From the NCBI GenBank assembly GCA_951406725.2, contig OX597817.1, forward strand, positions 117,944,001 through 118,006,000: a DNA stretch of 62,000 nucleotides. Direction: 5' to 3'. Each line of letters opens with the position of its first letter. The stretch's first letter is position 1. Source of the stretch: Octopus vulgaris (lineage: Eukaryota). Below, piece by piece: positions 346 through 55,224 of the stretch. Both the position numbers and the translations under genes were made by a program. The notes beneath the pieces are model-generated. The model had not been told where the DNA came from and searched no databases. It saw nothing but the letters and a program-made list of their open reading frames with translations.

Positions 346-561
346 TATATATATGAGATGATGGTGTCATTGAGACCCAACGGTGTCAGGTAATGCTGAA
401 TAAGTGCTATAGACAGACCATTGTTAAGTTCCAGATTCGGTAATATTGCGAATAAGGGGTTCAACTTTGGGTCTATGTCAGCGTGTGCATATAAGAATTA
501 TTTGCGTAATAAGATAAAAAAACCAAGGCTGTATAGATATTAGAGCATTTATAGATGGAAA

Positions 562-613
562 GCCTTACAGTTGTTTCTAGGATATTTATTAATAACATCC
601 CTTCATCAGAGAC
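562..613 (-). ncRNA. Minimal type I hammerhead ribozyme (family 1)
   Basis: Minus strand reads GTCT-CTGATGA-A-GGGATGTT(ATTAATA)AATATCCT-A-GAAAC-AACT-GTA/AGGC; core intact, one change in the helix III palindrome. Confidence 0.7.
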
Positions 614-756
614 GGTGTGAGAGGAAAGTTAATTCATAGTTAGTTTAGATGTGACACAAAATAGAGTGAGGTGGAGGAAAGAAAATAGATGCAAGATATG
701 TATGGGTATTTTGCATCACATCTAAACTAATTATGACTTAATTTTCCTCTCACACC

Positions 757-808
757 CTCTCCGATGAAGGGATATTATAAAAAAATATCCTAGAAATAGC
801 TGTAAGAC
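757..808 (+). ncRNA. Decayed hammerhead copy (family 1)
   Basis: CTCT-CCGATGA-A-GGGATATT...AATATCCT-A-GAAAT-AGCT-GTA/AGAC; U4>C and C15.2>T substitutions. Confidence 0.6.
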
Positions 809-913
809 CGATCTATAAATGCTCTAATATCTATACAGCCTTGGTTTTTTTATCTTATTACGCAAAAGCTTCATATATTTATATATATATATATGTATAT
901 ATATATATATATA

Positions 914-1395
914 TGCAAATACCATAAGGGCACAGATAGTGTGCCTAAAGCCACCTGGAGACGATGATCTCCTGGTGCTAAAAGCTACAGTAACACCCAT
1001 CCTTTGTAGTTAGCCATATTGAGATGGCTATTATACTTTACATTGTCGAGCGGTTACTGTGTACATCTCGTTCAGAGATTTAATAATGCTTGCAGACAGT
1101 TTTTCGAAATCAGTGACGGAAGTTACTAGAAAAACACATATATTTGCTTACAGGCTTTCCCTTTCATCGTGATCCGGTGATTACCACCCGTTGACAAGAG
1201 GCAGCAACCTCGAAACCGCGGTCCGGTGCGTATCACTTAGGCTTACAAGAAAGGGATGGCCTCCCTTTGCAAATACCATAAGCGCACAGATAATGTGCCT
1301 AAAGCCAGCTGGAGACGATGATCTCCTGGGGCTAAAAGCTACAGTAACACCAACCCTTTGTGGTTAGCCATATTGAGATGGCTATTATACTTTAC
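914..1395 (+). mobile_element. Retrozyme-like element: about 1.36 copies of a 354-bp unit with one hammerhead
   Basis: Near-identical 128-bp direct repeats at 914-1041 and 1268-1395 (period 354) enclose a hammerhead fold at 1185-1228. Confidence 0.7.
1185..1228 (+). ncRNA. Minimal type I hammerhead ribozyme (family 2), core decayed
   Basis: CACCCG-TTGACAA-GAGG(CAGCAA)CCTC-GAAAC-CGCG-GTC/CGGTG; predicted cut after 1223; core differs from CTGACGA at two positions. Confidence 0.7.
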
Positions 1396-50900: not shown

Positions 50901-51764
50901 TTCCTTCTCAACTACTGTCCTTAAAACATCATTGATTCCTTTCCTATTACTGTTACATATCAATAAAGAAATCGAATGTATTGACAATAATATATGCGTT
51001 TAATGGAGTCTAAATATGTATTCTTAGCATGTAGTTGAATATACTCCCCAGTCCATATTTTAAACACGTCAATGTCAGTTATGATTTATGAGCATCACCC
51101 CATTTCTGCATGGAATAACGCCAATATGTCATCAAGTTTATATCAAGGATCATCTTATTATAACGTAAAAATTAGAATATTAAGTAGAATCCATGCGAAA
51201 AATTTCATGCGCAAACTATATTGTGATACATTAAAGGAACCGCTTGCGACACATTAATTACAATTTTGCAATTATTTCACTGTTTCTTTTTTTTTCTGTA
51301 GCGTTCATACGAGGGCTATTATTCATTTTACATACATCCTATCATTTTTGAGATTAATGTGTACATTAATAATCATAGAGACCAGAAACACACCACATAG
51401 ACACAATATTCATATAATAATGCATCGTTAATATCTGATTATATATGGGGATATTTTATGAGCTTACAGAGGAGTACTTAACAAAAGCGATATTTTGCGC
51501 AGTGATATGCATTTATCATCTAATTTCTTTCTTCTTTGAAATACGTATTTTTGAAAAAACTAAATTTAACAAATATACGCTCAATTTAATTGCAGACATT
51601 TCGTTTCTTTACACCTCTGAATTTCTAATGGTATAAAACACAAATATCACCTGGTATGGAGTCGGTGGTGAAGAAAATGCCGAAGGCTTATATTGTTTGT
51701 TTTCATAGCAATAATCTTTAATAGCTTATGGTGTCATCAACCATTTAATATTCGCTAGTGTAAG

Positions 51765-51965
51765 GAGGCGGATTGGCAAGAATCATAAGCAAGTTGGACA
51801 AAATGCTTAGCAGGTTTTCGTCCGTCCTTACGTTCTGAGTTCAAGTTCTGCCGAGGTCGACTTTGCTTTCAATCATTTCGGTGTCCAGTTAAACACTGAG
51901 GTCGATGTAATAAACTTACACCTTCCCACAAAATTATTGGCCTTGTATCAAAATTTGAAATCAAT
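51765..51965 (+). mobile_element. tRNA-derived SINE (family B)
   Basis: Collinear with 24858; GAGTTCAAGTTC B-box. Confidence 0.8.
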
Positions 51966-53511
51966 ATCAGTACAAAGTGTCAATGTATTTAGATACTAAT
52001 TTTCTGGCGCAAATGAATGACAGAATCTTCCGATGACATTTTGTAAGCCTTCTAGGAACTTATCTTTAGGGGTGAAATTTTAGAGAACGGGCAAGAGGGG
52101 ACTCAACTAAATATATATAATTGCGAAGTGGGGGTAATGAACTGAATAATGGGTTAAGAACGTCGTTCGGTTCACCAATCCTACAAGGGACAATCTGATT
52201 AGCTTACGCAGTTTCCATACAGATTCCGTTCGCCAACATTATTTACATTCATTAGGTTGACACAATCTATGACAGAAGACATTTTCCCAATTTGCCGCGA
52301 CGAAATCATGAACCCATACTGCAAATCAAATATATTAAATACAATAACAAACCTATTCCCATTATAAATGGTTAAGAAGAATATCCATTCATTATGTTAA
52401 ATTAACGATTTTAGGTATAATAAACATTTGAATTTTACAAGCCAGTTTCAGGGTCATAGAGAAAATGTTCTCATATGTTCGTTATATATATATATAAATC
52501 TATTGAATTATGCATTGTAAACTATATGATGACATAATGAATGTTTAATTTTTAGATGAAATAACGAGACACTTGAAGACAACAAGACGCTGGAGCCAGC
52601 GATCACAAATCTCCATAGTTGCTCGACCGGCATTCATTGGAGATGCATATTTTGTTTTGAAAATCTCATTTTCGAACTGTTTTCAATAAAGAAGAGATGG
52701 TTCAGGATGTTGTATTCTTGAATACAGTTAACCCAGTAAATTGAAACAGAAACCAACTACAGTTCCTCAATAAAAAAGCACATATGACTACATTGTTAAA
52801 AGGTCCGCTTCACTCATATTGCTTCAGGTTCAATTCTAGTGCGTTGCACTTTGAGCAAGTACGAGCATATGTACAAGTCGCGTCAACGAATATTTTGCGG
52901 TCGAATCTGGTAAACGCTAACGGTGCGCAAAAATATTATATGTGAAAATATGTGTATATATGCATTTATGTTAGTATGTTGCTTAACTGCCGTATTTCTA
53001 GTGTCAGAATATTTCCTTCAATTTTGTCCTATTTGTACTCCTACAACTAAACGCACTTTTGTAATAAATGCATCCGCTTTGCTATTGCTTCGTATGCTTA
53101 CTTTATCCTCACCATCACAACTGTCATAATCATCATTCCCACATTTATCATTGACATCATCACAATCATCTCTATTATCTTCAACTCAATTTCTGTCCTT
53201 ATTGTTTCTTCCACCATCAGAGTTATTCCATTCTTAGCAGTAACATCACAATTATCATTGTCACCATTATCGTCTCTACAGTCACTATACCTGCCTTTAC
53301 TTACTTAACTGCCCATAACTATATAACGACTACTTTTATAAATCAGTTCTTGATATGTTCTCGTACGGATGACGATGAGCTTTGTTTGATCGGTGTTTTA
53401 ATAACACAAAAAACATATTTTCAATGAATCATATGCTAATTTATACATACAGAACGATAAATGGATAGAAACAAACACACACACACATATACATGTACTA
53501 ATATATATATA

Positions 53512-53925
53512 CTCTTTACTCTTTACTCTTTTACTTGTTTCAGTCATTTGGCTGCGTCCATGCTGGAGCACCGCCTTTAGTCGATCAAATCGACCCCGGA
53601 ACTTATTCTTTGTAAGCCCAGTACTTATTCTATCGGTCTCTTTTGCCGAACCGCTAAGTGACGGGGACATAAACACACCAGCATCGGTTGTCAAGCAATG
53701 CTAGGTGGACAAACACAGACACCCCCCCCACACAAATACACACACATATATATATATACATATATACGACAGGCTTCTTCCAGTTTCCGTCTACCAAATC
53801 CACTCACAAGGCATTGGTCGGCCCGGGGCTATAGCACAAGACACTTGCCCAAGGTGGCACGCAGTGGGACCGAACCCGGAACCATGTGGTTGGTTAGCAA
53901 GCTACTAACCACACAGCCACTCCTG
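53512..53925 (-). mobile_element. Full-length composite SINE (family A)
   Basis: Reverse complement of 24397-24803. Confidence 0.9.
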
Positions 53926-55139
53926 TACGTATATATACGTACGCACATTGATAAATACGTACACACATATCTACACACGTACACATTTATACTTCCGATA
54001 TTTTACCACAACACAAAAGTTAACGAGTAAAATATCTTTAAGGAATTACGCACACGCTGCTATCGCTGCTTGTCAACATATGCAACACTTAAGAAGACAT
54101 CGGAAATGAAATTGTGTGTTTCCCAGCAATCAGCTTCTGTGTCGCTCATCTGCAATTTTCTGAAGCAAAGAAACACACCAACAAAAGAACACTTCCAAGA
54201 TGTCAGCATTATCTCATCTTGATTCCTTTAGATGTAAGCGATAGTAACGTGTTATTAAACACACATACTTAAAATATACGCTTCGTGTATTTTCCCGTGA
54301 ATTCAATACCCTGGTGGAGTATATACACTCTCAATGCACCCGAGTCATGGACAGGCGAGGTAATTCGCCTTCAACCCCATAGGAAAGGGATGAACATCCA
54401 TGTTTTTGTCATTTTTGTGGCTTAGCAACATCACGTATCCCCCAGGAAAGAAAGCAAGACACCTAGGCAGTCCACGACTTACAGGCTCGTGGCTTGTAAA
54501 ACCATGTTCTGGCATGCCGGAAATTGCGTGTTTTGCGATATTATCATCCTAGAGCTGCTTTTATTTCATAGGTAACAAAATAATTCTCAAGATTTGAATC
54601 TGACTGAGCAGAGATGTGAAGACCATGTCAATGCAATCTTACCAAAACAACAAGTATTTTATAAATGTTTTGACGTCAGGTGGTACTTAACACATATTCT
54701 TGAGGGTGACTAAAGCAAGAAAAAATAATGAAGAAGATAGAGACGTATCAATGGCTTCCTGTCGGCTTAACAGAGATAAATGAAATGTTACAATTAAGAT
54801 ATACATAATCTTCCCCTACATTCAGCTGCTCCGGCATTGTTGTCTGCAAAACATTGAAATATCGGTTACATATATAAAAAAATCAACGACACGGAAATGT
54901 ACTTCGGTTTCAAAACACATTAATGATAATTATCCCTTTTGAAATATTTTCTTCAGAGATCTAAACAGAAATCAGTTAATTGAATATGCACATACACTCA
55001 TTTTCTCGGGCTTATACAGCTGGACGTAATTGATGATACTCTCATAATCTTTGTGTAATAAAGAGAAATACATGAAGCAATAAATATATAAATATTTTGC
55101 ATTCTCTCTCAAATGCTTCGTTCAGAGTTTCCACATAAC

Positions 55140-55224
55140 CTTCCCCTTCCTGGTTCAACATCCACAGACTAGTTTCGGGGTATTTGCCCCACTAGTGTGT
55201 GGATGTTGAGCCAGCAAGGGGAAG
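55140..55224 (-). ncRNA. Hammerhead-shaped hairpin (family 5) whose catalytic core reads CACTAGT
   Basis: Minus strand: long stem I, CACTAGT, GGGG(CAAATA)CCCC, GAAAC-TA-GTC, long stem I. Confidence 0.65.

Follow-up and report, generated by a model that had tools for sequence, protein, structure and literature searches.

Hammerhead-like motifs in probable retroelement relics from a 62-kb stretch of the Octopus vulgaris genome

Described hammerhead elements and the octopus window

A 62,000-nucleotide stretch of the Octopus vulgaris genome (assembly GCA_951406725.2, contig OX597817.1, positions 117,944,001 to 118,006,000 of the forward strand), referred to here in its full length as the window, carries motifs that resemble hammerhead ribozymes and have close counterparts in described systems. 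Minimal type I hammerhead ribozymes (min-HHRs) occur in the pseudo-long terminal repeats (pseudo-LTRs) of Penelope-like elements (PLEs) and, ‘massively’, at other places in metazoan genomes (Cervera & de la Pena 2014, PMC4209133). Several consensus families are found per genome and display extreme sequence variability; helix II is comparatively long and helix I comparatively short, and there is an unpaired nucleotide between A9 and position 10.1, a G10.1-C11.1 pair, a palindrome made up of 15.2-16.2 and loop 3, and a covariant U3-A8 (PMC4209133). Copies are mostly solo and are ascribed to truncated PLEs, dual min-HHRs lie about 100-700 bp apart on opposite strands, and activity, which is low, is displayed only by dimers (PMC4209133). 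The canonical animal helix III consists of a 1-2 bp stem and a palindromic loop of 2-4 nt (PMC4209133). Dimer experiments (Lunse, Weinberg & Breaker 2017) are summarised in PMC6765202. The window probably holds fossil insertions of at least five unrelated short retroelement families, either 5'-truncated 3' ends of PLEs or non-autonomous derivatives of the ‘non-LTR retrozyme’ type, and all with a type I hammerhead close to the 3' end.

Two further sets of elements are relevant. Animal non-LTR retrozymes have been defined, and are derived from PLE pseudo-LTRs (PMC7229834; Li, Clavereau & Pollet 2026, preprint 10.64898/2026.07.22.740005). According to Craig et al. (2021, PMC8557442), PLE insertions are heavily 5'-truncated and form partial tandems, and a further copy, inverted and 5'-truncated, is often found at their 5' end; they favour microsatellites as targets and carry the hammerhead close to the 3' end. 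Among PLEs, the ‘Hydra’ clade is characterised by a length below 3 kb, a C-terminal endonuclease, DKT in place of DKG, an RWK motif, a divergent RT4, canonical hammerheads and (TA)n targets (PMC8557442).

How do the octopus motifs compare? With the PLE min-HHRs they share the type I topology, a short self-complementary helix III, the U3-A8 variant, the multiplicity of dissimilar families, an unpaired base between A9 and helix II, G10.1-C11.1, a long helix II with a short helix I, opposite-strand pairs, mostly solo copies and a presumed need for dimers. They differ in that no PLE open reading frame (ORF) adjoins any site and in that helix III has 8 nt (families A, B and D) or 12 nt (motif F1), compared with 4-6 nt in the strict min-HHR. 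Because of this greater length, helix III is closer to the canonical animal form, and F1 is possibly stable as a monomer. A preliminary description of the window had stressed that helix III is self-complementary, has almost no loop and is a different palindrome in each family. Self-complementarity and the differences between families are borne out, but the lack of a loop is only a manner of description: the ‘loopless’ 8-nt palindromes (AC-CGCG-GU, AC-GCGC-GU, AU-AGCU-GU) are nothing new, as they equal a 2-bp stem with a 4-nt palindromic loop (PMC4209133).

With the animal non-LTR retrozymes the window shares low-GC, short head-to-tail units of 170-400 nt with a type I hammerhead, the two hammerheads of family F lying 348 nt apart. 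It differs in that F is only a dimer in which one of the two ribozymes is mutated, family B is a 1.36-mer with a single hammerhead, there are no arrays, and families A, D and E are inverted, not tandem. The architecture of PLEs and the ‘Hydra’ clade is matched in 5' truncation, pseudo-LTR-type partial tandems, the inverted 5' copy, the 3' hammerhead and (TA)n insertion, whereas GIY-YIG, DKT and RWK are seen in relatives and the window itself holds only about 110 reverse transcriptase (RT) codons with a stop. The newt satellite 2 and Schistosoma Sm-alpha ribozymes, as far as Forster et al. (1988) are cited in PMC4209133, share a weak helix III with a palindromic loop, by which a pair of copies within a single transcript builds an extended intermolecular helix III (the double-hammerhead model); those are abundant, conserved and active satellite or SINE-like (short interspersed nuclear element-like) families, whereas the window copies are single and decayed.

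Motifs, families and the question of chance

A custom type I descriptor consisted of a helix I of at least 3 bp, the box CUGANGA (at most one mismatch, or the 3/8 covariant) and helix II on the 5' side, and of GAA, a helix III from A15.1 to U16.1, H17 and helix I on the 3' side. A min-HHR descriptor did not require helix I. Expected numbers come from dinucleotide-preserving shuffles in 2-kb blocks. The type I descriptor recovered the motifs A1, A2, B, D and F1 (Table 1), and in its loosest form gave 7 matches against a shuffle mean of 2.3. Five matches have a self-complementary helix III with no loop and 4 bp or more (shuffle mean 0.07). Three satisfy a ‘strong’ descriptor, in which the core is canonical or covariant, helices II and III span at least 4 and 3 bp, respectively, and the helix III loop does not exceed 2 nt (0.07). 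Three matches were also obtained with the min-HHR descriptor without helix I, against a mean of 0.015, and seven with the 3'-half motif, against 1.06. The excess of hammerhead motifs over chance is real.

Could the motifs nevertheless be chance resemblances, i.e. short boxes beside hairpins and palindromes in AT-rich, repeat-rich DNA with no common origin or function? The absence of an Rfam hammerhead (see below), the 2.3 and 1.06 matches expected per shuffled window with the loosest and the 3'-half searches, and the core mismatches at several sites would fit this. Three candidates are probably of this kind and were rejected as chance level: a CUGGAGA match at 42232, and the 3'-half matches at 36078 and 48575, the latter two because 1.06 are expected and five of the seven observed are sites already described. 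As an account of all the motifs, chance is nonetheless very improbable. Motifs whose helix III is palindromic, or whose core is canonical or covariant, are expected 0.015-0.07 times per window and observed 3-5 times, and the motifs have in common features that were not sought, namely an unpaired base after A9, G10.1-C11.1 and a place near the 3' end of tandem or inverted repeat copies.

Repeat structure was analysed by dust-masked self-BLAST of the window and by a sensitive all-against-all comparison of the elements. The families share no sequence beyond the ribozyme boxes, as the preliminary description had maintained. That description had counted at least five unrelated hammerhead families, at 562/757, 1185, 22190/44677, 42813/42998 and 55140; the type I descriptor recovers those at 562/757, 1185 and 42813, and four of the five are hammerhead-like. 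It had not listed family F, which has the best motif of the window.

The 5' core box is intact in A1, F1 and C1 (CUGAUGA) and in F2 (CUGACGA), and B carries the U3-A8 covariant. It is altered by U4C in A2, by G8A or loss of N7 in D and by loss of C3 in C2, and is absent from E. The 3' core (G12-A13-A14, A15.1...U16.1, H17) is present in A1, A2, B, F1, C1, both arms of D and E, whereas F2 has GAUA (A14U). Helix I varies from 7 bp in D and 6 bp in F1 to 4 bp in A1, 3 bp in B (5 with a bulge) and 0 bp in C1. Helix II has 4-8 bp in all motifs, and helix III is restricted to a hairpin of 2-4 bp or to pairing between two molecules. Helix III is self-complementary in B (ACCGCGGU), D (ACGCGCGU), A2 (AUAGCUGU), F1 (AUUACCGGUGAU) and C1 (ACGU), and has one mismatch in A1 (ACAACUGU). 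Beyond what the descriptors demand, an unpaired nucleotide lies between A9 and 10.1 in A1, A2, C1 and possibly D (if N7 is lost; there is none in B and F1), G10.1-C11.1 is present in B, F1, D and C1, families A and C combine a long helix II with a short helix I, and A and D have opposite-strand motif pairs about 100-200 nt apart. Most copies in the window appear to be inactive relics, as they carry inactivating core changes (U4C, G8A or N7 loss, A14U, C3A) or have lost their partner; any activity would belong to source copies elsewhere in the genome.

Table 1. Position and character of the elements and motifs in the window
Feature	Position	Strand	Basis and remarks
Family A foldback	489-878		self-BLAST; two inverted copies head to head, centre near 683
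A1 hammerhead-like motif	562-613	-	type I descriptor; CUGAUGA, helix III ACAACUGU, A17
A2 motif	758-807	+	type I descriptor; inverted partner of A1; CCGAUGA, helix III AUAGCUGU
Family B partial tandem	915-1395	+	self-BLAST; 915-1041 repeats 1269-1395, 94%
B hammerhead-like motif	1188-1226	+	type I and min-HHR descriptors; UUGACAA (U3-A8 covariant), ACCGCGGU, C17
Family F	13611-14185	+	two tandem short units, ~315 and 232 nt, hammerhead in each
F1 canonical type I hammerhead	13669-13730	+	both descriptors
F2, degenerate tandem partner of F1	14018-14077	+	CUGACGA, GAUA for GAAA (A14 to U), helix III AUCACCAGUGAU
Family C, first copy (C1)	44626-44770	+	motif 44677-44712; min-HHR descriptor
Family C, second copy (C2)	22120-22263	-	motif 22175-22210; AUGAUGA (C3 lost), ACAA for ACGU
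Family D foldback	42636-43117		inner palindrome 42776-43053 (82%), outer arms 42636-42702 / 43051-43117 (100%)
D hammerhead-like motif	42813-42902	-	type I descriptor; CUGAGAA, helix I 7 bp, ACGCGCGU, C17
D right-arm copy	42958-43016	+	3'-half scan; helix II 3' strand, GAA, ACGCGCGU, C and helix I 3' strand kept
Family E near-perfect hairpin	55140-55224	-	85 nt; hammerhead 3' half (CCCC-GAA-ACUAGU-C-helix I) and inverted copy, loop CAAAUA
Divergent RT, dead remnant	6601-6936	+	one in-frame stop; motif B/C region FDVSMFSFDGAE ... LYRDDVL
Non-LTR retrotransposon RT fragment	5024-6079	-	Pfam RVT_1 E=3e-12, FADDIKL box; further C-terminal piece 5024-5374
Mariner/Tc1-like transposase C-terminal remnant	6940-7335		directly 3' of the divergent RT remnant; tail 7057-7335; contains HSPYSPDIVPSDYYLYNSL
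Composite tRNA-derived SINE family, ~420 nt	24383-24803, 38032-38438, 53524-53936(-), 15385-15622(-), 34996-35204		
Nearly intact Helitron Rep/PIF1-helicase gene	57397-61864	-	ORFs 1186 aa and 292 aa

Families A and B are situated 36 nt apart inside one (TA)n tract. In family A, positions 489-866 match 878-501 with 81% identity by self-BLAST; the arms align with 88% identity and are identical over the 3'-terminal ~57 nt. Each hammerhead-like motif faces outward, and the right end of the foldback is 14 nt from a (TA)n tract. A1 displays a helix I of 4 bp, an unpaired A, a helix II of at least 8 bp, a second unpaired A, GAA and, within helix III, a single A/C mismatch. The U4 to C change in A2 should be inactivating. 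Family B can be read as two successive copies that end at the same 3' position, the first 5'-truncated to 127 nt and the second 354 nt long; only the 354-nt copy extends back to the hammerhead, which consists of helix I CCG/CGG and helix II GAGG/CCUC with the loop CAGCAA, followed by GAA. The element starts 1 nt past (TA)n and ends on a degenerate TA/CA-rich tract.

Family D adjoins an (AC)n(AT)n tract (42561-42635) at its left end. Its motif has a helix II GGAAU/AUUCC with a 47-nt loop and GAA, and the core can be read either as G8 to A or as loss of N7 with the usual extra base kept. In the right-arm copy the 5' core has decayed to UUGAAGG, and helix I lacks its 5' strand. Family E stands apart. 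The preliminary description had counted it as a hammerhead, a claim that fails: it forms one 85-nt hairpin, CACUAGU occupies the 7 nt that separate helices I and II, G5, A6 and A9 are absent, and since there is no CUGAUGA box it cannot be catalytic. Its fold has a minimum free energy (MFE) of -58.8 kcal/mol, with no gain on dimerising. E is probably an inverted duplication of a hammerhead 3' half, and its inverted copies, apparently truncated inside the ribozyme, would constitute the extreme case of the head-to-head arrangement. The loop CAAAUA of helix II is presumably the Schistosoma-type loop 2. A weak Rfam match to mir-9436 (27.9 bits) covers 55150-55213, and annotation pipelines could call such foldbacks microRNA-like (miRNA-like) hairpins. 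A minor and unlikely possibility is that inverted duplication at ribozyme loop 2 could be a recurrent route by which ribozyme debris gives rise to hairpin small-RNA loci.

These families show the partial tandem with a common 3' end (B) and the head-to-head inversion with the hammerhead toward the outer 3' end (A, D and, in extreme form, E). Together with several ends on microsatellites (1 nt away for D and for the 5' end of B, 14 nt for A, and several families near (TA)n/(CA)n), this tandem and inverted architecture matches that of PLE insertions (PMC8557442). The link to Penelope-like elements made in the preliminary description is supported. The microsatellite association of element ends is only suggestive.

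Might the A, D and E foldbacks instead represent miniature inverted-repeat transposable elements or other foldback DNA transposons, or hairpin-RNA or miRNA-like loci, in which the hammerhead strings are incidental? The three are indeed near-perfect palindromes of 390, 482 and 85 nt, there are weak Rfam matches of miRNA type (92 bits to MIR821 on 528-839 and that of E to mir-9436), and E has a very stable fold. This interpretation is improbable when the content of the arms is considered. The arms of A and D each hold a complete or nearly complete outward hammerhead and are copies of the entire element, not short terminal inverted repeats that flank unique DNA. PLEs have been described to produce 5'-truncated copies inverted head to head (PMC8557442), opposite-strand pairs 100-700 bp apart are known (PMC4209133), and one of the related PLE loci described below, L003, has the same arrangement beside an intact RT-GIY-YIG ORF. 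For E alone, a hairpin role of small-RNA type may exist as a secondary function.

F1 displays the textbook form: helix I GAGCCA/UGGCUU (6 bp), CUGAUGA, helix II GAAUU/AAUUC (5 bp), GAA, AUUACCGGUGAU and C17. Its helix III is a 12-nt palindrome (13712) that can alternatively form 4 bp with a CCGG loop in the monomer, so that F1 may do without a partner. In F2 helix I is weakened, and the predicted distance between the cleavage sites of F1 and F2 is 348 nt. Both units begin about 60 nt 5' of the hammerhead and carry a conserved 3'-terminal box, ATAAATTTGC..TGTTAAATTGCTAATAA.CCACCCATATTATT, and F ends at a CA/TA/TG-rich tract.

The preliminary description considered the elements non-autonomous; this is not supported as it stands, and the families diverge in this respect. 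B consists of tandem copies 5'-truncated to different lengths, as full PLEs produce, and only the F pair (13675/14023) resembles a retrozyme tandem of short units. Does the genome then contain any non-autonomous retrozyme families, or are all copies 5'-truncated 3' ends of full-length PLEs? The different truncation points and common 3' end of B, the truncation of E inside the hammerhead, the attribution of most solo PLE hammerheads to truncated PLEs (PMC4209133) and the PLE-type RT remnant in the window are all consistent with autonomous debris only. On the other side are the two F units, which start at about the same point 5' of the hammerhead, their ~300-nt size, which fits retrozymes (PMC7229834), and the finding of no coding remnant 5' of F. 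That PLE debris accounts for everything is on balance doubtful, though far from fanciful; the two classes moreover grade into each other, as retrozymes are derived from PLE pseudo-LTRs (10.64898/2026.07.22.740005).

Family C is the least certain. C1 has CUGAUGA, an unpaired A, a helix II GGCU.GAU/AUCAGCC, GAA, ACGU and U17, and passes the min-HHR descriptor, which sustains part of the original claim for 44677/22190; the remainder is weakened, as helix I has 0 bp at 44677, and 22190 is without C3 and the palindrome. (AAT)n(AAC)n is present 5' of the motif in both copies, and in C2 (GTT)n(ATT)n immediately adjoins. As the conserved (GTT)n(ATT)n sits on the would-be 5' side of the hammerhead, the motif may be antisense to a tailed element of long or short interspersed nuclear element (LINE/SINE) type. 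Family C would then be the 3' end of such an element with a (GTT)n(ATT)n tail, and the hammerhead-like string an antisense coincidence. The same compound microsatellite is found directly at the same junction in both copies, helix I is lacking, C2 is devoid of C3 and ACGU, and a 6-nt indel falls exactly at helix III. Yet a canonical core, unpaired A, G-C-closed helix II, GAA and ACGU-U would be expected together only about 0.015 times per window. We lean, only slightly, against the coincidence. A 12-mer, TTCGAAATTACC, is identical at 44658-44669 (family C, 5' of CUGAUGA) and 13707-13718, where in F1 it spans the 3' strand of helix II, GAA and the first part of helix III (E=0.019 in a small comparison). 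Neither relatedness nor a permuted hammerhead is accepted as its meaning, since it leads to no consistent set of helices; the identity is probably a coincidence.

The reverse transcriptase, its relatives and helix III pairing

A candidate for the enzyme class that mobilised such families is also present in the window. Frame 2 of the divergent RT remnant reads ...FDVSMFSFDGAEIASLDGLYIFDYF...(stop)...LYRDDVL over about 110 codons; no hammerhead adjoins it, and it is 5-7 kb from A/B and F. Searches of Pfam (RVT_1), NCBIfam and PDB sequences with this family gave no match. The uninterrupted 61-aa piece, used as query, found 259 relatives among 1.8 billion representative proteins. The longer relatives, read by eye, display motif A FDIEEFYPSI, a divergent motif B and YRDDGL, as well as DKT (in P0270 and P0171) and RWK (in P0171), and P0160 and P0212 have GIY-YIG-like C-termini; these features belong to the relatives only. 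An AlphaFold model of P0160 has a mean pLDDT (predicted local distance difference test) of 53 and is confident only over the first ~190 residues, and with this model Foldseek matched group II intron RT, diversity-generating retroelement RT and telomerase reverse transcriptase (TERT) at E ~3e-4 to 1e-3. The family with RT and GIY-YIG comprises 827 proteins at E<=1e-20, of about 700 aa, on contigs of 2.4-3.4 kb, and its precomputed Pfam matches are only PF26215 HTH_animal and PF28514 DUF8422.

Loci of this family come from marine metagenome contigs (L001 and L003-L007) and from a genome (L002; GCA_037890685.1, CP147935.1). In five of six loci analysed with their flanks, a sense-strand CUGANGA...GAAAC hammerhead lies 130-235 nt past the stop codon. 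Upstream hammerhead copies are direct in two loci and inverted in one; L003 has the opposite-strand arrangement of the A and D foldbacks beside an intact RT-GIY-YIG ORF, and the genomic copy, L002, has (TA)n at its 3' end. The remnant had been called Penelope-like in the preliminary description. This is upheld by relatives that combine RT, a C-terminal GIY-YIG domain and hammerheads in the 3' untranslated region, features listed for the ‘Hydra’ clade (PMC8557442). By matching descriptions rather than Repbase Hydra sequences, the family would appear to represent that clade.

The hammerheads of all six related loci have an unpaired U on both sides of helix II, and their helix III is 9 nt long. 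In an alignment of seven hammerheads from these loci, 83% of cells are paired compared with 63% after shuffling (none of 500 shuffles was as high), all three helices covary, and there are 18 double-sided changes. Helix III shows 100% pairing, and its AU/UA and AU/CG/GC exchanges flank an odd central base. As that base would leave an impossible 1-nt hairpin loop, helix III of the related loci must form between two molecules. This is independent support for the dimer model, and different sublineages keep different palindromes.

Can the octopus motifs pair in this way? Cofolding with ViennaRNA predicts an intermolecular helix III for A2, B, F1 and D, with a free energy change of -8.5 to -17.3 kcal/mol relative to two monomers (F1 -17.3, D -14.9). 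The helix III homodimers of B, D and F1 reach -14.7 to -16.5 kcal/mol (B -15.5), that of A2 -9.3 and the within-family pair F1/F2 -12.8, and cross-family pairs reach -7.6 kcal/mol at best. Because homodimer duplexes are more stable than those of any cross-family pair, family-restricted dimerisation is physically expected, and family-specific pairing follows directly from the differences between palindromes. In tandem transcripts such restriction would be automatic, the partner being the neighbouring copy.

A scheme for the source elements can be drawn by analogy with published systems, from which cleavage, dimer dependence and the mechanism of retrotransposition are taken. An active source element would be transcribed from tandem copies into RNA longer than one unit. 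Helices I and II would fold inside each ribozyme, and the short self-complementary helix III, too weak alone, would pair with a second copy of the same family, normally the tandem neighbour. The double hammerhead would then cut after H17 to yield unit-length RNA with 5'-OH and 2',3'-cyclic phosphate ends. This RNA, possibly ligated to a circle, might constitute the template for the PLE RT and GIY-YIG endonuclease, and insertion, preferentially at (TA)n-type tracts, would result in 5'-truncated, partial-tandem and head-to-head inverted products.

Are the helix III palindromes more than a means of dimerisation? They could have been selected as ‘addresses’ that permit same-family double hammerheads only and prevent cross-processing among co-resident PLE or retrozyme families. 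This we consider unlikely. If it were so, dispersed solo copies in host transcripts would be cut in trans only when the source element of their own family is expressed, and the pairing code proposed in the preliminary description would add a layer of specificity to the double-hammerhead model; no present result requires it.

Several observations weigh against the interpretation of the window as a set of hammerhead-bearing retroelement relics. Scans with Rfam release 15, at the gathering score and at E<=10, over the whole window and two sub-windows gave no hammerhead-family match. The sole hammerhead-related match is RAGATH-1-hammerhead (16.8 bits, gathering score 56.3) at 13645-13729, on F1, and the output at E<=10 is mostly microsatellite ‘miRNA’ noise. 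The textbook F1 motif (13675) escapes Rfam too, so these models are insensitive to this subclass and the negative is weak evidence. A covariance model of the six related PLE loci, run unfiltered on the window, likewise gave no significant match (D was best, with 10.6 bits and E=1.8); the model is fitted too closely to its own family, and because it misses the window motifs, the octopus families are not close relatives of those elements. Two pattern scans of Joint Genome Institute (JGI) metagenome contigs for F-type and B-type hammerheads yielded no matches, and neither a full-length PLE with the 3' ends of these families nor any further genomic copy was found.

The motifs themselves contribute to the doubt. 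Only F1 has an uninterrupted canonical core; the A1 box is intact but helix III has its mismatch, and B combines a covariant core with a 3-bp helix I. Family A has the extra unpaired A on the 3' side of helix II, although A...A flanking helix II mirrors U...U in the related PLE hammerheads, which makes the family more credible. In family C the tail is on the 5' side of the hammerhead. The hammerhead fold is never the monomer MFE, being 1.6-4.6 kcal/mol worse (constrained versus free, -8.2 and -10.3 kcal/mol for B, -16.7 and -18.3 for D). Comparison of the three pairs of copies within the window shows the hammerhead to be conserved no better than the 3'-terminal box, which with two copies per family says little. 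With perfect repeats and family C excluded, two of nine element ends lie within 5 nt of a microsatellite compared with 6.4% expected, which is not significant. Against these stand the excess over shuffled sequence, the unsought common features and the insertion architectures, and fossil insertions of PLE or retrozyme type remain the probable explanation.

Neighbouring elements and wider meaning

The window has about 33% GC, is rich in microsatellites and carries dense transposon debris; ARAGORN found no tRNA in it. Prominent is the Helitron gene, whose block has 51% GC against the 33% background. Its relatives have Helitron_like_N, PIF1 and Pif1_2B domains, and the best named relative, from Octopus bimaculoides, has 58% identity. 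For the non-LTR RT fragment there was no relative with more than 54% local identity, and none with more than 48% over most of the query. The mariner/Tc1-like remnant is followed by a 109-bp tandem duplication of 99% identity (7310-7529).

In the SINE family, a tRNA-like head that contains A and B boxes is combined with an internal (TA)n(TG)n microsatellite and a 3' module that is conserved. The string TAGGCTTACAAGAA is common to this module (e.g. 24700-24720) and to family B just 3' of its hammerhead (1240-1253), and TTGACAA lies upstream of it in both; this could represent a common 3' recognition module or a coincidence. Two SINE copies at 15621-15984 form a 94% palindrome around (TA)n. A 257-nt imperfect palindrome at 16473-16729, 70% self-complementary, has no hammerhead boxes.

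The main inference of the preliminary description is correct, and the phenomenon is already established biology: the motifs are a good example of a known phenomenon, not a new one. What is added is a picture of density and of form. Debris of ribozyme-bearing retroelements is dense in this genome of invertebrate type, with five or six unrelated families in 62 kb, and the window offers side-by-side worked examples of every published PLE insertion architecture. As the Rfam hammerhead models miss all sites here, genome scans based on Rfam will undercount this class and may label its foldbacks miRNA-like. For the classification of PLEs, an abundant family with RT and GIY-YIG that is unseen by the Pfam RT model, and that has an RT fold, covarying 3' hammerheads and the features of the ‘Hydra’ clade, may be useful.

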